The translations under genes were made by a program, and so were the position numbers. The notes below the pieces were generated by a model. That model saw only the letters and a program-made list of their open reading frames with translations, was not told the DNA's origin and searched no databases. A stretch of DNA of 38,299 nt. It comes from Klebsormidium nitens. Its lineage: Eukaryota > Plantae > Klebsormidiophyceae. Below, piece by piece: positions 1 to 28,399 of the stretch (positions within the stretch are counted from its first letter, which is position 1; the number at the start of each line of letters is the position of its first letter). The stretch covers positions 1-38,299 of the forward strand of contig DF237692.1 of NCBI GenBank assembly GCA_000708835.1. The letters run 5' to 3'.

Positions 1-88
1 CTGTTAAGACGTAACCGCTGTCGTTTCGCTAACAAGCAGCTAACGAAATCCTGACGAGAACGAGGTTAGACTTAACCAGACGTAATCG

Positions 89-3000
89 TTACAGCTGGAA
101 GTGAGTCAGGCACCAGCCGGTTGCCCCCACGCCCCCCTCCTTGAGAAAGCCTTGCATCCACGGCCGCCGCGGGACCGCCTTGCACACCGCGCACGCCGCT
201 GGATCCGCACACCCACCCGACTCGGTCACGAGGTCGACCAAGGCTCTCACGTTCGCTGGTAGCCCCTCGCGCATGGCGACGAACTCATCCGACTTTAGTG
301 GCGCATTGCTCCCTTGGGCCGGAGCCTTCCGAAAGTTGCACCATCTCAACGCGAGAGCTCGCACGGCCGGCCGCAGCTCCGACAGCCCGTTGCGGTGCTT
401 CCAAGGGTAGTCGATCCCCTCTAGCGGCACGTCGGAAGGGCGCACCCCGCCAATGCTCAGAGGAGTGAAGCCGCCAGCCACCCGAGGCGCCTCTGGGTCG
501 GGCTCGCACACGCTGTGCAACGAAGCCTCCGAGTCGTCGCGCATGGCACTCGAGTTGGCAAAGAACGTGCCATCGAACGTGATGACCTTCTCTCGACCAA
601 AGGCGTAGGTCGCGAGCTCGGAGGTGGGCCCCTCCGTCCGCTCAACTCTCAGAGGCGTCCCAACCATTCGAGCCTCCGCCTCGGCCGCCTCGACCTCGCT
701 CGTGTAGAGGTGCACGCAATCGGGGCGCGAGCACACGTGCTGGATCCGCGAGCGCGCCGCGAGGTCGTTGAAGGCTTGCATCGCCGAGTCAAAGACCCGA
801 TCGTCCAACCTAGGGCCGCTCGACCCCTCGAGGCACCTCGTGGCCATGTCCCCCGCCTCAAAGTTGAGGCTATGTGAAGCGCCGAGTGCCGCGGCAAAGT
901 GGTTGCGCAGCAGGAGGCCATGGGAGATGAGGGTCGTTCCGGAGAAGTTAAAGATGCCATCCTCCTGCAACCAAGGAGCAATCAAGAAGGTCAATCAATG
1001 TTGCATTCATTATGGTCTCCTTCATTTGAAGGCTATCATCAAGAGTCAAATATTGGCATGAAATCAAACGCGCAGTTTGGGTTGGTGTTGAGCATTCTTG
1101 GAGAGAACGGAAAGCTTGATCTCCAAGACTTGGCGGCTTCAGCATCTACGTGCAAAGATGCACATGCTTATGTTGGAAGAAGGGTGCACGAGTACCCACG
1201 ATCAACAAAGATGCCTCCGCCAGGCCCGCACTCGTGCACTAAAGTATACCCAATTCAAAGATGTGCGATATGCAATCGGAGTGATATCCGCTTTCAATGG
1301 CCTTTTCCACCTCATGTCAATGCAGTTGTCTGCCGTGATTGTATCACAATCAGATATGATCGATTGGATTGCCTGACCACAATGGATGCTCGGCGCAAGT
1401 ACAAAGTGCGTGATCTCACTTGCTTGCCATGGGTTCCGAGCCCTGAGCCACCATATCAAGCACGTTACTATCTCAAATGGGACGTGATTTCGAAAGCCCT
1501 TCAAGAAAATTACGGACCTCAAGGTTTGAGACAGAAAGGCCTTTGAAGCTAGGAGTAAAAGAGGGGTGGCGCGATTGCAGGGGAGAGAGAATCAGAAGTG
1601 TAGATGACTCTTCGATGATGATACTCACCTGGCCGTCGTAGGCCACCGAGCAGCATGCCGCCTCTCGTCCAGGAGCGATGCGGCAGACGCGCCGATAGGT
1701 GGTGACCTCAAAGCGTGCTCCAGCAGTTGTCAGCGACCCCTTTCGACTCTCGATCTTCCACGGCCGGCCGCATGGAGCCACAGGGTCGCGTGGCCTTGGA
1801 GCGCAAAAGTGCTGCGCTTCATCGCGGCGTCTCACGCCCTCCTCGCCCCAGCGCTCGCAGAGGCTTGCGACAATCGCCCCGCCTCGGCTCATGACCGTAT
1901 CGATCCTCTTGTGACTGTGGCCCATGTCAAGTGCCGCAGCAGAGAGGCACTCCCAAGGCTCGAGAGAAGCCTGGTGGGCGCACGCGACCTTGAAGTCCTG
2001 CCGGCGACACGCGGGATTGTTGCAAACCAGAATGTTCCTTGCCCTCGCTTCTCGTTGCGAAACCCTCTCCGCGCGCCTCTCGGTGAGGGTCGGCCGCTTC
2101 CCATCTTGGCCACCATTTGCGGCAGGCTCGCTCACGATTGCCTCTGCCTTTGCAAGTACCCTTGAAAGATGCGGGCACCGCTCCGGTCCCAAGCACTCGA
2201 CGTGGCTACAATGCGCGGTCTCTCCCGCCAACACGCACACCACGGGCTGCTCGCCCCTATCGCTCACGACAAACACACGGAGCTGCGCCCCCCCTTTCCA
2301 CGCCTCCGCATCCAGCCCAAAGAGAGCACCTCCCACGCACCCCCCTTGTTCGAGGGGCAAAATCCAAGGCAGGCCGTCGGTGACCTCGCGCGCAAACGGG
2401 CGGCTGTCGTCAAAGGCCGTGAATTCGGCCTCTCCGTTTTGCGCATGAGACGCGTTGCCCCCAAAAACCCCATGTCGTGGTCTCTGCACGCCCTCTGACC
2501 GCACAGGCACCGAAAGCTGCCCGTGTGATCGATCTTCACGAGCCGCGGCGCGTTCAAGACCCCCCTCTCCGTCACCAAAAGGTCCAAAAGGCGCCCGTTC
2601 GAGCCCCCAACAAGCGGGACCAAAAAGAGGCCGGGAGCAACCGCAATCGGAGGGATCCTGCTTCGGCCCAACTCGGAGAGGATTGCCTCCGCGCCAAGCT
2701 CAAGTGGGCTCGGCCTCACTTCGAGCGCTCTCTTCACTCCGCGCCTTGATGGAGCGACTGCCTTGGGCTCGCGGCAATACGGACAGGCGGCAAGGTCCCT
2801 CCTCTGCACAAAGAATTGGTGACCGCCCTCGCTTGCCTCCTCTCCTGGCCCTACCTGCCGAAGCTCTTTTGTCCGGGGGAACACTTCGTACTTGGCGAGA
2901 AGCTCTTCTTGGGAAACTGGGGAGCCACTCGCACTTGAAACGAAGGGGCGCCCCTCCTCGTACTGCGCCTCTACGCACCGCAAGCACAGAAGATGCCCGC

Positions 3001-3454
3001 CTCCGCCTCGGCAGATGATCGCCCCACCCCGGTTCCGTTTCCGCTCCCAGACGAACGGATCGCACCCTCGAGTGTAGACCGCTCCCTTTCCGCCGCACGT
3101 GCGCCCGATGCACGTCGAACCGAGCCCCCCTTGAGCAAAAGCCCCTGCAGGCCGCAGAGCGAAGGCCAGCCCGTAGTCGAAGAAGAAGTCAGCGCCCCCC
3201 TGCTTGGCCGCATAGGAGGGGCGGCCTCCTCGTATTCCCCCAGCATTTGGCAAGGGAGGCACGGCAGCTGGGACGCTCTTGACGTCGCTAAAGACAGGAG
3301 ACGGGCCCTCGAAATGGACTGCCGCGCAGCTCCTAACGGCTTGACCGGCCTTCAAAGTCTCGTGCAAGCTTGCAGCGGCCGCTGGGGTGGTCGAGGCGAT
3401 GAGCACGAAGCTGGAGGGTTCTTTCTCGTCACGACACGCCGTCTCGTGATTCAT
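89..3454 (-). mobile_element. KDZ (Kyakuja-Dileera-Zisupton)/HMGXB3-like transposase gene with SWIM-like and CxC-like Cys clusters; spliced, probably continuing beyond the left edge; frame break near 2440-2510
   Basis: ORFs 2264..3715, 1473..2510 and 89..994 are collinear on the minus strand. The exon ending at 1629 (CAG|gtgagt) splices in phase 0 to the exon starting at 964 (ttgcag|GAG). The join reads CCSVAYDGQ|EDGIFNFSGTTLISHGLLL, followed later by FDSAMQAFNDL..HVCSRPDC..VITFDGTF. This resembles recalled CxC4-type/KDZ motifs (YDG..GIFN..L.SH.LL; C..C..VI.DG). Upstream Zn-finger-like motifs are CLCGQRACRDH and CSHVECLGPERCPH. The start at 3454 is tentative because it follows a good acceptor (ctctctgctgtcag|gATG). 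Confidence 0.6.
1058..1546 (+). CDS. Intronless F-box-like plus XPA-like Zn-finger/DNA-binding-domain protein (162 aa from ATG 1058), nested antisense in the transposase intron
   Basis: The N-terminus FGLVLSILGENGKLDLQDLAASASTCKD is F-box-like. The C-terminus CAIC-x19-CRDC...LTTMDARRKYKVRDLTCLPWVPSPEPPYQARYYLKWDVISKALQENYGPQGL parallels the recalled XPA core (C4 finger then ITKTEAKQEYLLKD.DL..L....K.NP....MKLYLK..V...S.EVWGS.EAL). The ORF is open from 899, so the start could lie further upstream. Confidence 0.6.
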   Translation: MKSNAQFGLVLSILGENGKLDLQDLAASASTCKDAHAYVGRRVHEYPRSTKMPPPGPHSCTKVYPIQRCAICNRSDIRFQWPFPPHVNAVVCRDCITIRYDRLDCLTTMDARRKYKVRDLTCLPWVPSPEPPYQARYYLKWDVISKALQENYGPQGLRQKGL

Positions 3455-3576
3455 CCTGACAGCAGAGAGAAAGCTTTGAGATTGAGCCGGTTTTGATGGC
3501 CCTAAGTCTTTGCGGCACCCCTTCAAAGGGGCGACTCTGCTTTGAAACGAAACTCCTCCCTCCTCCCTCCTGACTG

Positions 3577-3987
3577 CTGACGTCATCAGAATTGGGCGCC
3601 CAGAAAGTTTGCCAAAAGCTCGGCCAACTTGGTGACAAGCGACGGCAGCTGACGTCATCAGAAGCGGGCGCCCAGAAAGTTTGCCAAAAGCTCGGACAAC
3701 TTGGACAAGCGACAACTGCTGACGTCATCAGAAGCGGGCACCCGGAAAGTCTATGAAAAGCTCGGACAACTTGGACAAGGGACGGCTTCTGACGTCATCA
3801 GACTTGGTCGCCCAAAAACTTTGCCAAAAGCTCGGACAACTTGGACAAGCGACAACTGCTGACGTCATCAGAAGCGGGCGCCCTAAGAGTCGATGAAATG
3901 CTCGGACACTTGGACAAGCAACGGCTGGTGACGTCATCAAAAACGGGCGCCCAAAAAGTCTTTCGAAAAGCTTGTACAGTTTGGACT
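3577..3987. repeat. Tandem array of ~70-bp units (6 copies), each starting with TGACGTCATCA
   Basis: Units start at 3577, 3649, 3719, 3789, 3859 and 3928. Approximate consensus ctgacgtcatcagaagcgggcgcccagaaagtttgccaaaagctcggacaacttggacaagcgacaactg. Confidence 0.95.
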
Positions 3988-4400
3988 TCGATTGTGCGCT
4001 AGATGGTCGGAAGTTGGGGCCGGCCATACCCCGCAGAATGGGAGGTGTACCAGAAAACGCCGAATAAAGTTCTTTAAAAAGAATACACCTTTTTCTGGTA
4101 CCAGGTTTGTATGGGCTAGCCGCCGACCGCACCCCACATGATCGGTTGCCGGCCATTTTGGACTTCGGTTGTGCGCTAGATGGTCGGGAGTTGGGGCCGG
4201 ACATACCCCGCAGAATGGGAGATGTACCAGAAAACGGCGAATAGCTTCTTAAGAAAGAATACACCTTGTTCTGGTACCAGGTTTGAATGGGCTAGCAACC
4301 CGGTACCCCACATGATCGGTTGCCGGCCATCCCCCGCAAAATGCAAGACGGTACCAGAAAACGCCGAATAGCTTCTTAAGAAAGAATACATCCTTTCTTG
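3982..4400. repeat. Satellite-like array, block 1 (177/127-bp periods)
   Basis: ttggacttcg.ttgtgcgctagatggtcgg... is repeated 177 bp apart. The core GTACCAGAAAA..TTCTTAAGAA..TT(C)TGGTAC starts at 4047, 4224 and 4351. Confidence 0.9.
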
Positions 4401-4579
4401 GTACGAGGTTTCTATGGGCTGTCAGCCAAGCCGCGCAAAATTTGAAAGCGGCCCAACCATCACCCGTAAGTTCTGAAAAGCGGCCGAATTCTTAAGGAGA
4501 AACACGCCCTTCTCTGGTGGGTCTGGTACGAGCCCACACCGTGCTTGATCGGCTCTCTGGCCATCCCCGGCAGAATTCC

Positions 4580-5057
4580 CGGCACTGGACTCCGCCTTCC
4601 GGAGTTGACCCTTAGACGGCTAGTACGAGTTGGAGACCGTGGGGAGACCGTCAGCCGTGACGTCATCTGTCTCTGATGACGTCATCAGAACTTGCTACGG
4701 TAGAAACTTTGAAAGATGCGAAATTCAAAGAGCTTTCCGAAGAAGTATCAAACACTAAGATCGGCCAGGAACTCCGCCTTTGGGAGCTTTCTGAGTTGAC
4801 CCTTCCCGAAAGCCTGGCACAACGGCCAGTACGAGTCGGAGACCGTCAGCCGTGACGTCATCTGTCTCTGATGACGTCATCAGAACTTGCTACGGTAGAA
4901 ACATTGACAGATGCGAAATTCAAAGAGCTTTCCGAAGAAGTATCAAATATTGAAATCGGCCAGGAACTCCGCCTCCAAGAGCTTTCTGAGTTGACCCTTC
5001 TCGGAAGCATGCCACAACTTGAGCGTAGTAGTGCGAATCGGAGACCGTCAGCTGTGT
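4580..5057. repeat. ~195-bp tandem duplication (about 2.5 units), each full unit with two TGACGTCA sites
   Basis: ggagaccgtcagccgtgacgtcatctgtctctgatgacgtcatcagaacttgctacggtagaaac occurs at ~4643 and ~4838, with a partial third start at 5041. Confidence 0.9.
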
Positions 5058-5069
5058 GAATGTTGCCAC

Positions 5070-6085
5070 ACCCTGCGGGATGTACCAGAAAAAGCCCTTT
5101 AGATTCTTAAAAAGTGATACGCCTTTTCTTGGTACACTCCAAATGTACGCGGGATGGCTGGACGTGCGCTTGATGGGCGACCCGACCATACCCCGCACAA
5201 TGGGTACGGTGTACCACAAAACGCCCAATTACTTCTTTAGAAAGAAATACAGCGTTTCCTGGTATACGCGCTGGTCGTATGCTGGATTGTCGGATTGCTG
5301 AATGGGGCAACTCGACCATATATACCTTGCAAGATGGGCGTACCACAAAAGGACCAATTACTTCTTTAGAAAGAAATACACCGTTTCTTGGTACGCGCTC
5401 AGGATCATGAAGTTTGATCGTCAGACTGTTGGAAGGGGCAACTCGGCCATACCCTGCAAGATGGGTGTACCACAGAAAGAGTGACTTAGATTCTTAAGAA
5501 GTGATACAGCGTTTCTTGGTACGCGCTCAGGATCGTGGGTAGTAGGATGATCAGGATGGGGCAACTCGACCATACCTTGCGCGCACGATGGGTGTACCAC
5601 AAAGGGGCCCATTAGATTCTTAAAAAGAAATACACCGTTTCCTGGTACACGCGGATCATGCTTTGGATGGTCAGACTGTTGGAAGGGGCGGCCGTCCAGC
5701 CAACCCTGCAAAACTCAGAGTGTACCACAAAACGCTGATAAGATGAAGAAGAGTTACTACATCGTTGATTGTACGCGCGGACTGTGTGTTGAATGGTCGA
5801 ATCACTAGAATGTGCTTGATAAGCAGGGCCGGCCAGACCTCGCCGCAGACTCTGCCAGGGCCCTGCCATATCCAGCCATACCCTGCAAGATTCAGAGTGT
5901 ACCACAAAGGACCACTTAGATTCTTAAGAAGTAAGACACCGTTTCTTGGTACACACGGATTAATTGTGTAAAGGGATGGTCGGATTGCTAGATGAGGCCG
6001 CCCAGCCATACCCTGCACAATGAGTGTACCACAAAACGCCCAATTACTTCTTTAGAAAGAAAGACAGCGTTTCTTGGTACGCACG
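5070..6085. repeat. Satellite-like array, block 2 (8 units, mostly 127-129 bp, one 177 bp)
   Basis: GTACCA(C/G)A cores start at 5083, 5211, 5340, 5467, 5594, 5722, 5899 and 6026. Most are followed by ttctt(t/a)a.aa and tttc(c/t)tggta(c). The 5722 unit is degenerate. Confidence 0.9.
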
Positions 6086-6121
6086 GACAAAGTGTTGGTT
6101 GGCCACATTGTGCGCTGCGGC

Positions 6122-6693
6122 CTCGGGGTGGCAACTCCAGTTTTAAAATGGATGGTGTTTTCTAATTGCCTTTCTCCTAAAATGACCCAAAACAAATCAG
6201 CTCGACGTTTTGTTTCATATCCTCGTATAGCCCTTGGTCTATAGTTTTCAAAACACCACTCGTTTTGAAATTTGGCCCCCCCCACAAAAAGTAAAACACT
6301 TTTAAAACATTTTAAAACGCCAAAATCTTAATACATGTATCTGCGGGTTAGGCGAACCTCAAAATTGCCCGTTTTATAAAACAAACAAAACAACAAAACG
6401 TTTTAAAACGCTTCAAATCCGGATTAAAACAAGACAAGTCGACAATTCGAGCCCCTAATATGATCCGTTTTCTCCTTGTAATATACGCAGAATCGCTTCT
6501 AAACTGCATACGGAATCCAGACAAGTCGATTGCCACTGAAAAAACAAGAACAAACATACAAATTGGACCTTTACCACCGTTTTAGAACAGTTTTTAACCG
6601 TTTTAAAAAGGCGTTTTACGTTTCCAAAACGACTAAACCTCTTGTTTTAATCCGCAGATGCCATGTTTTAAAATTGGGAGTTGCCACCCCGGG
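6122..6693. mobile_element. MITE-like non-autonomous DNA transposon (572 bp) with TIRs and 8-bp TSD
   Basis: The left end CTCGGGGTGGCAACTCCAGTTTTAAAA matches the reverse complement of the right end, CCCGGGGTGGCAACTCCCAATTTTAAAA. The direct repeat GCTGCGGC flanks it at 6114-6121 and 6694-6701. The interior is AT-rich with no credible ORF. Confidence 0.85.
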
Positions 6694-7652
6694 GCTGCGG
6701 CGAGCCATTTTCAGTAGCTTGAACCCCAAGCGATAAACCAAGAGGCCGCATTGCTCACCTCCTGCCAAAATGCACCTCCGCCAACCAGCCCGGCCGCTCT
6801 GACACGCTCGTGGCGCCACCAAATGGTCTGCTCCTTGTGCGAGCTCGCTGCGAACAGTGCCGCAGGCCACGAACTGGGTCCCGACGGTGCATAGCTTATG
6901 AGTTGCGAGGACGTACCGGGCACTTCCACTGCATTTCGGCCGAATCTCAGATCGACGGCGGCAGGAAAACCCCGGCCCATCGGACGGCTGAGAAAGTTAG
7001 GTGGAAATGTAACCTCGCGCCGGCCCGCTCGATAGGTTGGCGCGGTCACTCGCGCGGGCGGGGCGCCTCGGCAGCCGCGGGCGGCGGGTTTATCCGTAGG
7101 ACGTACGATTTTTTGTAAACCTGGCACACCGTCCAGCAGTGTCCGAAACTGCACAGTCAAAATGGCAGTGGCTTGAAGAGGGCAATCCCCGGCCCGAGTT
7201 GCTCATGAAATGCAGGCTTGGCCACTGCTTGCAGAAACTTGTCGTCTGCCCGGGGATTGCTATCGGGGCGAGAATGCATGAAAGCGTTGACATTCACGTC
7301 CCTAAATTCTTGAGGCACCAATCCACCCGCATTGGAGATTGGTGCTTCTCACAAGTTCAAAAGGCTTCGTTGGAGTGCTGATTACGGGACGCATGCCCCT
7401 TGGGCCTTGAGGCAGCACTTCTTGTCGCTATTTAGTTGCCTGTGTGGCCTGCAGACTTAATTTGAAAAGTGTGCGGCAGACGAATACGAGTTTGGCATCC
7501 TGCAAGAGGGCCGCCCTTAAATCAAGTGAACCTGGTTGGCTGGTGCTTGCAGAACTTGGAAAGGGCTCGCAAAAGTGAGGCGACGTCACGGTCTGTACTT
7601 GATTGATTGGACAGTCTAGCAAACAACAAGGGGTGGGCTAAGGGTTGAAGCA

Positions 7653-24239: not shown

Positions 24240-25792
24240 TCACGAATCAAATGTCCTTGCTCGACTAGCCTGGCAGTGGATCTTGTGCGACGGCCAGTGC
24301 AGCTTCTGATGCTCCTTGCTGCAAAATGAATCATAAGGTGATCAAAAAGATGAGCAATCCTTAAACGTGGGGCTTCATGACTTTGAAAAGTTCAAAGGTG
24401 ACAAACATGGCCAACGTTGATTCATGCTCTGCGAAGATACTTCCAGAAATGTTTTGGGGAAAAGCTGACTGGTTTCAAAGAGCACGTGTCTCTCTGGAGA
24501 AGCTGATGCGGCACACTCCCTCTGCATAACATTCTCTGTCAAGAAAGCAATGCTCGCCTCTTCCCTTCCACTCGTTCTTACATGTAACTTAAGCCAGTAT
24601 TTTCGAAGGGTACCTGGTAAGTTCCAGTGCAAATAAACAGGGTCTGGAGTCTTCATCTGCGAATGATAACAAGGCGGTAAGTACTCACCTGCAGTAACGG
24701 GCGATCTGACAGAGCGCGCACTTGCCAAACTTCTTTTCGCCGGTCTCGGGGCCTTCTGTGCACAGCTTCCAGGAGCAGACCACAGGAACCACATCCCCAT
24801 CTCCAGTGTGCTTGAGCTTATATTCTTTGATGTTACGCAGCAATCCGATAGGCGCCTTCTTGCCCTGCATTCTTGCTTCGATGTAATACCAGCCAAGATC
24901 GTAAATTGGTGGCGCCGCATTGATCTTTTTTTTATGGGGCTTGAGTCCGGACAGCGCATTATGAGCGCGCATCTTCTTCACCCGTTTCGAGCAAGCAATG
25001 AAGGGCTGTGGTGCAAGATTGCACAGGAGAACCTTCGGGCTTGAAGGTGGGGTGAACCCTGAGCTCCTTTACGGGCGAGCCTTCCAAAATCTCTGCAATC
25101 AGCTTGAGTAAGCCCTTGTCCAAGGCCCACAGTTGGCAGTCTTCCGCACTGGCAAGAGACACGGCTAATCTTGACATTATGTCGCGAACCTTCCAGGAAT
25201 CGAAAACACTTAGTTTGCTAAGGAAGTCGCGGGATACAAGATACCCAAGACATTCGAAGATGGATTGCTCTTCCGCAACGTCCTTCATGGCTTCCCTGAA
25301 AGTTCTGGATGCTTCTGCAAAGTTGCCCAGAGTCTGTAGAGGCGTTCCAAATGACAGGGTGATCATTGAGGGGCCCATGACGGCCGCTCCTGCCTCCAAA
25401 GAGCGGGCTTCTTGGACAGCCATCCGAGAAAGCGTACGGTAAATATCACGAGCAGCCAACCTTTCCTTTGGCCCTAAGATCCTCAAGCAGCGTTCTACAA
25501 CAATCTTGCTCGTTGACAACATCGAAAACGCCAAAGTGCAGCCAAGTGAATACAGTGGATCTTGTTCTGATGTATACAACAGAATCCCTTTCCAAAGCTT
25601 CCTGAGAACAACGCCGCCATAGTAGACTGCAATTCCCTGTGCGATTCTTGCAAGTTGTTCTGCCTCTCTGCTTGCTTTCACCATATACATGCCTCCTAGA
25701 AGCTTTATACCCTTGTCTATGCTTTCTACATCGCTTGAAAGCAGCTTGGCAGCACACTCTTCCACCAGGGACTCAAGGTCCCGTGTGTCCAT
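24240..25792 (-). pseudogene. MYND zinc-finger gene copy A with a frameshifting ~8-nt deletion near 24985
   Basis: Exons 24689..25792 and 24240..24318 total 1183 nt, which is not a multiple of 3. Copy A has gaaacg-ggtgaagaagatg where copy B has gaaacg-gaggctggggttgagaagatg. The MYND CALCQIARYCS|KEHQKLHWPSHKIHC is therefore out of frame with the 277-aa N-terminal ORF. Confidence 0.75.
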
Positions 25793-26889: not shown

Positions 26890-28399
26890 TCAAATTGTAC
26901 TTGCGCGACCAGCCTGGCAATGGATCTTGTGCGACGGCCAGTGCAGCTTGTGATGCTCTTTGCTGCAACGTCACAACCTGAATAACTCAATGGAGACTTA
27001 CAAATGCCATCTTCGAGACATTCTGATAGATACGATGCTTCAAGGAATGTCTTCGAGAAAGGCTCATTACATTTGATGATTAGAACCTTGTGCCGCACAC
27101 TCCCTCTGCGTAGGTTTTTTTGTAAGCAAACGAAAAACGCTTCTTCCCTGTTACTTTTACCTTCCCACAAGGTAATCCACCAGGTGATGTCCCAGCTTTG
27201 AGTTAAAGGGTCTGCAGTGACCACTTCCTGGCACGAGGTCCATCTTCGAAAGGTATCAAGGCAATCAGTACTCACCTGCAATAACGGGAGACCTGACAGA
27301 GCGCGCACTTGCCGAACTTCTTTCCGGCGGTCTCGGGGCCTGCTGTGCACAGCTTCCAAGAGCAGACCACTGGAAGAACGACGTAACCATCTCCACTTTG
27401 CTTGAGCTTCCATCTACCGACATAACGCAGCGCTCCCAGTGCTGCGTGTTTGCCCTGCATTCTTGTCTCGATGTAATTCCAGCTCCGATTGAGGGGCGCC
27501 CCGTTAATTTTCTGCTTGTGGGGCTTAAGTCCGGATAGTGCGTTGTGAGCGCGCATCTTCTCAACCCCAGCCTCCGTTTCGAGCAAGAAAACAAGGGATG
27601 CTGCGCAGGACTGATTGGGAGAACCATCGGGCTTAAAGTTGGGGCTCAGATTGGGCTCCTTCACGGGCGAGCCTTCCAAGATTGCTGCAATCAGCTTGAG
27701 TAGGCCCTTGTCTAAGGCCCAAAGCTGGCTGTCTTTTGCAATCGCCAGAGACTCGACTAACCGTGACAACAAGTCGCGAAGCTTCCAAGAATCAAAAGCA
27801 GTCAGCTTGCTAAGGAACTCTGGGCTTACAAGGTACCCAAGAGTCTCAAAGATGGATTGTTCTTCCGCGACGTCCTTCATGCCCTCCCGGAAAACTCTAG
27901 AGGCTTCTGCAAAGTTGCATATGTTCCGTAAACGCGTCCCAAATCTCAGCGTGTTGAACGAAGGGCCTTCGACGGCCGCTCCAATTCTCTTCAGAGAGCG
28001 GGCTTCTTGAACAGCCATCCCAGAAAGCGTTCGGTAGATGTCACGAGCAGCCAACCTTTCCTTTGCCCCTAGGATCTTCAAGCAGCGTTCTACGACAACT
28101 TTGTTGGATGAGAGAATCGACAATGCAAAATTGCATCCCGTTGAATACGTGGTCGGCGGCTTTGGACATCCTTCTGAAGTCCTCAACTGCAGGCCTTCCC
28201 AGAGCTTCTTGAGGACAACGCCGCCATTGTAAACTGCAATCTCCTGAGCAATTCTTGCAAGTTGTTCCGCTTGTTTGCTTGCTGTCACTATATACTTGCC
28301 TCTTAGAATCTGGATGCCCTTATCAAGGATGTTCACATCGTCTGAAAGCAGCATGGCAGCACACTGTTCCACCAAGGACTCAAGGTCCCTTGGGTCCAT
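26890..28399 (-). CDS. MYND-type zinc-finger protein, copy B (~398 aa, 2 exons)
   Basis: complement(join(26890..26962,27276..28399)) is 1197 nt. It has a helical-looking N-terminus, then CSWKLC..KFGKCALCQVSRYCS|KEHHKLHWPSHKIHC, a MYND signature split by a phase-2 intron. Confidence 0.85.

Follow-up and report, generated by a model that had tools for sequence, protein, structure and literature searches.

What is a second gene doing on the opposite strand inside the intron of a transposase gene? The question is raised by the start of contig DF237692.1 of the alga Klebsormidium nitens (assembly GCA_000708835.1), whose 38,299 nucleotides, analysed as a whole, we call the window. On the minus strand lies a gene of the type found in KDZ elements, some of the most poorly understood DNA transposons in eukaryotes, and its intron contains an antisense open reading frame (ORF). 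Our answer is that the locus probably represents a KDZ-type element with a nested accessory gene that is under selection and encodes an XPA/Rad14-like protein. KDZ stands for Kyakuja-Dileera-Zisupton, a group of DNA transposons whose fungal members carry TET/JBP accessory genes (PMC12730594 and work cited there). The features on which the argument turns are as follows, in window coordinates.

2444-3454, minus strand: exon 1 of the putative KDZ-family gene, first part, with an ATG at 3454-3452 and about 337 codons in frame; RNA-like contigs reach 3456
1629-2441, minus strand: exon 1, second part, 271 codons in a different frame, ending ..AYDGQ
965-1628, minus strand: phase-0 GT-AG intron of 664 bp, between ..AYDGQ and EDGIFNFS..
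92-964, minus strand: exon 2, 291 codons from EDGIFNFS.. to ..THFQL, with the stop at 89-91, covered by RNA-like contigs
884-1784, minus strand: predicted cysteine cluster of CxC4 type, interrupted by the intron (coding 1629-1784 and 884-964), from a surrogate hidden Markov model (HMM)
1058-1546, plus strand: nested ORF, intronless, 162 amino acids plus stop, with a predicted N-terminal helical part, C4 zinc finger and XPA/Rad14-like alpha/beta part
1262-1537, plus strand: predicted zinc finger and XPA/Rad14-like DNA-binding core, residues 69-160 of the nested protein, from profile searches, AF2, Foldseek and VIA-align
1530-1537, plus strand: 4-bp insertion (near 1533) relative to sister copies, from the alignment; compare the tails of proteins P0001 and P0002

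The initial annotation, made from the letters of the window, had proposed a phase-0 intron at 965-1628 that is richer in AT than its flanks, and both points hold. Contigs identical to the window skip exactly these 664 bases and span the 1629/964 joint in all four RNA-like runs (X3, X5, X6 and X7, from a single study; the run type was guessed as RNA and the contigs are assembled and unstranded), with CT..AC ends that correspond to GT..AG on the minus strand. GTGAGT follows ..AYDGQ at 1629, ..TTGCAG precedes EDGIFNFS.. at 964, and the splice-site dinucleotides are retained in five of five aligned copies (the window and sister loci L001-L004). Contigs cover the exons from about 124 to 3456. Taken together, the splice joint, the absence of the intron and these limits of coverage mean that the four runs are RNA in practice. 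The GC content is 46.8% in the intron and 47.9% in the nested ORF, compared with 63.5-65.6% in the exons, and at third codon positions (GC3) it is 43.6% in the nested ORF and 70-80% in the exons. The coding region of the host gene holds this single intron, which falls inside the CxC4 motif. Two RNA-like contigs end at 3456, a position that follows an AG on the minus strand and lies immediately 5' of the ATG, and one of them extends into 12 unmatched letters, which suggests a further intron in the 5' untranslated region near 3456.

To which family does the host gene belong? A surrogate HMM was built from four CxC4 regions called by Pfam itself (in proteins P0029, P0040, P0053 and P0065). It gives the spliced window protein 36.9 bits across the junction (a 35.4-bit domain at residues 558-636), compared with 4.1 bits for exon 1 and 15.5 bits for exon 2 when these are left unspliced, and the best of 1000 shuffles reaches 5.3 bits. 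By this profile, splicing restores a KDZ-type CxC4 motif. The Pfam models for KDZ, CxC and SWIM have no above-threshold match on the window exon pieces, and the Pfam CxC4 model itself does no better than E 0.022, for the half motif that exon 2 of sister L002 contains. The amino acid identity of the first part of exon 1 is 70-74% to L001 and L002 and 71% to L007, and that of exon 2 is 78-85% to the sister copies.

The family assignment comes from the sisters. Searched against 1.84 billion representative sequences, the exon-2 ORF of L001 (705 amino acids) matched 96 proteins, made up of fragments of the same family and dozens of distant proteins that match through residues ~470-660. Ten of these matches were scanned: PF18758 (KDZ) was found in eight, two above the cut-off and six just below it (E 6.5e-6 to 0.006), and PF18717 (CxC4) in four, two above the cut-off. 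HMMER links the L001 and L002 ORFs to the proteins that pass the PF18758 cut-off with E-values of 3e-14 to 1e-6; among these, P0029 (E 3e-14) and P0040 (E 2e-9) score 35-37 bits for PF18758, whose cut-off is 26.6, while PF18717 scores 38-44 bits on P0040 and P0053. Sequence comparison thus supports a place for the host gene in the KDZ-type transposase family, with membership that is transitive, through distant proteins that carry KDZ. The proposal of a KDZ-like transposase can therefore be kept at the level of the family, through the rebuilt CxC4 motif and the sisters; the window pieces themselves have no Pfam match and lack the catalytic part.

Is the nested ORF a gene? Searches of 5.8 billion proteins found ~15 homologues of the nested protein, and every one with a readable context lies on the opposite strand between ..AYDGQ and EDGIFNFS... 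No free-standing relative was found among these proteins, and a search of metagenome contigs with the nested-protein alignment gave no confirmed relative. The same intron, with its splice sites, and the nested gene are present in eight sister loci (L001-L005 and L007-L009, where L004 and L005 appear to be one copy), and the family falls into three lineages: the window type (162-176 amino acids), the long type of L007 and L008 (304 amino acids) and a type from ENA metagenomes (P0108). Between the window and L007 the nested protein is 43-44% identical and the flanking exons are 71-85% identical. Judged by its ORFs (exon 1, 672 amino acids; exon 2, 708; nested, 304), L007 is an intact-looking, master-like copy. 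Its long nested ORF enters exon 1 by ~85 nt on the opposite strand (L007:6900-6983), and this overlap coincides with the stretch of the CxC4 motif that is best conserved. The distant KDZ relative L006, from the same assembly (GCA_000708835.1) and 29% identical, has an uninterrupted motif with neither an intron at this site nor a nested ORF, so that intron and gene form a pair restricted to this subfamily.

Substitution patterns point the same way. The ratio of non-synonymous to synonymous substitution (dN/dS), estimated by the Nei-Gojobori method on a five-copy DNA alignment (window and L001-L004), is 0.16-0.28 in the nested coding frame (dS ~0.3-1.5), 0.6-2.4 in four control frames of the nested region and ~0.3 in the antisense frame that shares wobble positions. 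The transposase exons give 0.08-0.36 (exon 1 first part 0.16-0.36, second part 0.14-0.29 in frame, exon 2 0.08-0.34). For all full-length nested pairs, deep ones included, the bootstrap upper bound of pN/pS is <0.7, and the nested ATG is kept in five of five aligned copies. By these measures the nested gene is under purifying selection wherever the subfamily is found, as conserved cargo rather than a one-off insertion. As for the complete 489-bp antisense ORF that had been described as filling the intron, the ORF is present at 1058-1546, and its end is altered: the 4-bp insertion terminates it early and replaces the conserved basic C-terminal tail, with the four zinc-binding cysteines intact.

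What, then, does it encode? In the family alignment a conserved N-terminal stretch (F..VLS..GENG.L.L.DLA..A.TCKD) is followed by two CxxC pairs separated by 19 residues, where the spacer in XPA is 17, and by a C-terminal block, L.CLTT.E/D-AR.KY...DL..L.W.P.P...RYY, with a basic helix after it in most members. No intact copy of the window lineage (window, P0001 and P0002) departs from C69, C72, C92 and C95; both pairs are also found in L007, P0105, P0107 and P0108, and are lost only in the frameshifted L003 and L004. A 12-row family profile searched against PDB sequences places RAD14 at ranks 1-3 (E 0.023 for 5lcl_B, 0.04 for 5g32, and 0.064), with human XPA at E 0.22 (6j44) and 0.6 (1xpa); RAD14 and XPA make up five of the 11 PDB matches, collinear over ~90-130 residues that extend from zinc finger to basic helix. 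XPA/Rad14 emerged only once more diverged members had joined the profile: PDB searches with a single nested protein (phmmer) and with a shallow six-row profile found no XPA match. A word-indexed search with the 12-row profile returned family members only and no XPA-named protein, an Atlas search with the C-terminal part gave no usable match, and NCBIfam has no match for the nested protein. In one member, P0003, the Pfam model DUF5768 matches weakly over the XPA-like part (residues 60-198, E 0.0039, 17 bits).

Structure prediction tells a similar story. AlphaFold on the six-row alignment was unusable (mean predicted local distance difference test score, pLDDT, 37), and on the 12-row alignment AF2 models residues 51-150 at pLDDT 77-88. 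When Foldseek compares this model with the PDB, DNA-binding domains of Rad14 or XPA take all ten leading places, at E 0.046-0.37 and with a probability of up to 0.98. VIA-align superposes it on XPA 6j44 with Z 5.1 and a root-mean-square deviation of 1.0 Å over 45 residues, and on Rad14 5lcl with Z 4.7 over 89-98 residues. A wide fold search independent of Foldseek ranks XPA third, level with unspecific helical matches to ends modelled at low confidence. We consider genuine XPA/Rad14-type homology quite likely on the strength of profile and model together, as these lines are marginal individually and concordant. The XPA-like label of the initial annotation is moderately supported by profile and fold, and finds no counterpart in the Pfam XPA_N and XPA_C models.

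Its F-box label fares worse. Helices are predicted at residues 2-16, 22-29 and 35-43 at pLDDT ~40, and the language model places the nested protein nearest to F-box clusters, with similarities of 0.83-0.89 that fall short of the 0.9 threshold of the tool; the wide fold search yields nothing beyond generic helical matches, and Pfam has no F-box match. From these predictions an N-terminal F-box identity is possible, with the balance leaning slightly away from it, and we do not file the nested protein as an F-box protein.

Among other accounts of the nested gene, the one that survives best is a passenger captured from the host, with no role in transposition and kept for some other benefit to host or element, such as interference with the host's repair or silencing. 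As might be expected of a passenger, its GC3 (44-54%) resembles that of other ORFs in the window (52-58%) rather than that of the transposase (70-80%), and between the window and L007 its protein has evolved far faster (43-44% identity) than the transposase (71-85%). We nevertheless regard this account as unlikely, because all homologues with a readable context sit in KDZ introns, with none free-standing among the 5.8 billion proteins, and because purifying selection extends across element lineages. A second account has a small mobile cassette with its own gene landing in an ancestral CxC4 motif, where it was tolerated as a spliced-out intron and rides along. The uninterrupted motif of L006, which lacks the nested ORF, and the sharply distinct composition of the intron would fit; this is harder still to credit when no copy was found outside KDZ introns, no terminal repeats are seen at the intron ends, and prolonged co-divergence, with the ORF under selection, speaks for a function. 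That the arrangement is mainly regulatory, with antisense transcription through the intron tuning the transposase and the ORF secondary, has the antisense position as its sole support and is very improbable in view of codon-specific substitution in one frame (dN/dS ~0.2), zinc ligands and an XPA-like motif kept across lineages only 43-49% identical, and the lack of antisense contigs in the four RNA-like runs. A chance ORF in a conserved intron, for which the missing Pfam match and the missing nested-ORF contig in the four runs could be cited, is already contradicted by the selection data (dS ~1 with dN ~0.2, in one frame only), by a reading frame that stays open in lineages just 43-49% identical and by a core modelled at pLDDT 77-88.

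We return to a KDZ-type element with a selected nested gene, and to the state of its copy in the window. Three changes had been overlooked in the initial annotation: the frame change in exon 1, a cut-off at 89/90 and the altered end of the nested ORF. The first two are located as follows.

2436-2446, minus strand: 10-bp deletion relative to sister copies, from the alignment; the resulting frameshift ends in a stop at 2264-2266
85-90, strand not assigned: break in homology with all sister copies

Ten base pairs near 2440 that are present in L001-L003 are missing from the window. The site is crossed by contigs of X3 (1885-3006) and X6 (2246-2738) that match the window exactly and show neither a joint nor a difference there, so that the transcript carries the frameshift too and its translation would end at 2264-2266. 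At the other end, DNA similarity to each sister locus begins at window position 90 (96 for L003), and where the window reads ..THFQL-stop, L007 reads ..THFQPYAALLH.. and continues for ~400 further codons. The window copy therefore ends ~170 codons before the KDZ-matching region (residues ~470-660 of the L001 exon-2 ORF), no Pfam KDZ domain is found in its pieces, and the ~400-codon C-terminal part with the KDZ catalytic region is absent. The X6 contig extends 158 letters past the window's left end, and transcription thus continues across the 89/90 break. With its frameshift and without its catalytic domain, the window copy is not a working transposase; it is a transcribed and correctly spliced pseudogene, unable to encode one.

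The sister copies give a view of the wider element. A gene with Prim-Pol and DUF5906 (D5-type helicase) domains converges on the transposase in L001, L002, L003, L004, L007 and L010, that is, in each sister copy with enough flank, and the window is without it because of the break at 89/90. A small ORF at L010:3307-3849 matches Herpes_ori_bp. By their domain matches, the Prim-Pol/DUF5906 gene and this ORF suggest a large element that encodes a replication module of its own. Its further features lie at the following positions.

L001:442-3219, L002:455-3243, L004:1594-3786, L007:10560-13126 and L010:10001-12789: Prim-Pol/DUF5906 gene
Window 3572-3986: tandem array upstream of the gene, 70-bp units each with a TGACGTCA palindrome
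Window 4643-5018 and 5208-5653: further tandem arrays upstream of the transposase
Window 6735-7031: conserved ~300-bp block, 2-3.8 kb upstream of the gene, ending abruptly with ..CTCGCGCCGCCCC at ~7031 in five copies

Also present in the upstream arrays are 129-bp units and 195-bp units that carry perfect TCTGATGACGTCATCAGA palindromes. L001, L003 and L004 share the arrays in part, and these could be putative binding sites or promoter elements. The sharp boundary at ~7031 may be a candidate end of the element, and we read window 1-7031 as a single copy of a large KDZ-type DNA transposon, represented by its 5' two thirds. Further along the window, and unrelated to the nested gene, two tandem paralogous ORFs of 277 and 375 amino acids lie on the minus strand at 24959-25792 and 27272-28399; both start MD.RDLESLVE.CAA.LLS, and the 375-residue one ends Cys-rich.

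A number of results weigh against the interpretation that we favour. On the side of the host gene, the Pfam KDZ model has no direct match on the L001 and L002 sister ORFs. No inverted partner of the ~7031 end was found in the sister loci or in 22 kb of L010, and no terminal inverted repeat (TIR) or target-site duplication (TSD) was found in the loci examined, the left end of the element lying outside the data. On the side of the nested protein, Pfam XPA_N, XPA_C and F-box have no match at E up to 10 in 12 members, the profile E-values of 0.02-0.6 for XPA/Rad14 in the PDB are marginal, and the fold Z of 5.1 is not above that of unrelated helical matches in the wide search. Several nested ORFs are damaged: that of L003 by a stop, a frameshift and lost cysteines, that of L004/L005 by a frameshift and a Cys-to-Tyr change, and that of L001 by a 96-bp duplication that removes the in-frame start, and the ORF of P0004 is broken; L002 has a 5-residue deletion. 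Finally, no contig in the four RNA-like runs lies over 981-1540, a result that cannot prove silence of the nested ORF, and the window copy is decayed. Scans of the intron with bacterial-type promoter and terminator models, which are not relevant to a eukaryote, were empty.

How might the nested gene work for the element? The nested protein would combine a C4 zinc-finger DNA-binding module of XPA/Rad14 type with a short N-terminal helical part that binds a partner and is possibly F-box-like, and it would be expressed from its own promoter in the AT-richer intron. As an accessory factor of the element, it may recognise distorted DNA or junctions of single- and double-stranded DNA, either at the element ends or in intermediates of transposition or replication. 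Nesting in the intron would tie the two genes together, in that deletion of one loses the other. The roles put forward in the initial annotation, namely ubiquitin targeting, repair of excision intermediates and counteraction of silencing, are hypothetical. A bolder version, which we think rather improbable, makes the nested protein the obligate third component of a self-replicating KDZ element alongside the transposase and the Prim-Pol/D5-type helicase: it would read junctions or hairpins during replicative transposition, its F-box-like part would recruit a host partner, and the intron would have arisen by the gene insertion that locked the pair.

Full-text literature searches found no paper that joins KDZ with XPA, or 'XPA-like' with transposons. 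Accessory proteins are familiar from other DNA transposons, where Myb-like, TnpA and MURB proteins play this part. The nested gene would resemble the second, DNA-binding protein encoded by two-gene transposons such as PIF/Harbinger (Myb-like), CACTA (TnpA/TnpD) and MuDR (mudrA/mudrB) (in part PMC12730594); in those, the second gene either neighbours the transposase gene or is produced from the same strand by alternative splicing, whereas here it is antisense within an intron, a nesting that, in the sequences compared, is kept in every close sister copy examined. Like the fungal KDZ elements that carry TET/JBP, the present element has an N-terminal CxC4 and, in its sister copies, a KDZ-homologous C-terminal region, together with extra protein genes (PMC12730594). 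Unlike them, its accessory gene encodes an XPA/Rad14-like zinc finger and no dioxygenase and lies antisense within the transposase intron rather than beside the transposase, its sister copies hold a Prim-Pol/DUF5906 primase-helicase gene, and its genome is of an algal type. Zisupton has TIRs and an 8-bp TSD (PMC12730594), in contrast to the present element, where neither was found in the loci examined.

The likeness to the minimal DNA-binding domain of XPA and Rad14 (6j44, 1xpa, 5lcl, 5g32) comprises a CxxC..CxxC finger, an alpha/beta part of the form T-x-x-E/D-A-R/K-x-x-Y..DL..L..P..YY/LY and a basic helix, all collinear. The nested protein differs from XPA and Rad14 in falling below Pfam detection and in being encoded by a transposon, and at 162-304 amino acids it is too short to hold, in XPA's arrangement, the N-terminal region that binds ERCC1 and RPA32 and the C-terminal region that binds TFIIH, for which no search was made. 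Its ~45-residue N-terminal stretch recalls the F-box (PF00646/PF12937) in its three predicted helices and its hydrophobic..DL..x..CK pattern; unlike F-box proteins, it is without the LP and W hallmarks, has no Pfam match in 12 members and is modelled at low confidence.

If our reading is true, the transposase intron would harbour a selected XPA-type sensor of DNA structure, an accessory factor of a kind new to DNA transposons, and the nesting would be a new way to link two element genes. Because the distant relative L006 lacks both, the subfamily would also be a clean case for the joint origin of an intron and the gene nested within it. The small nested protein would offer a concrete handle on the DNA intermediates made by KDZ elements.

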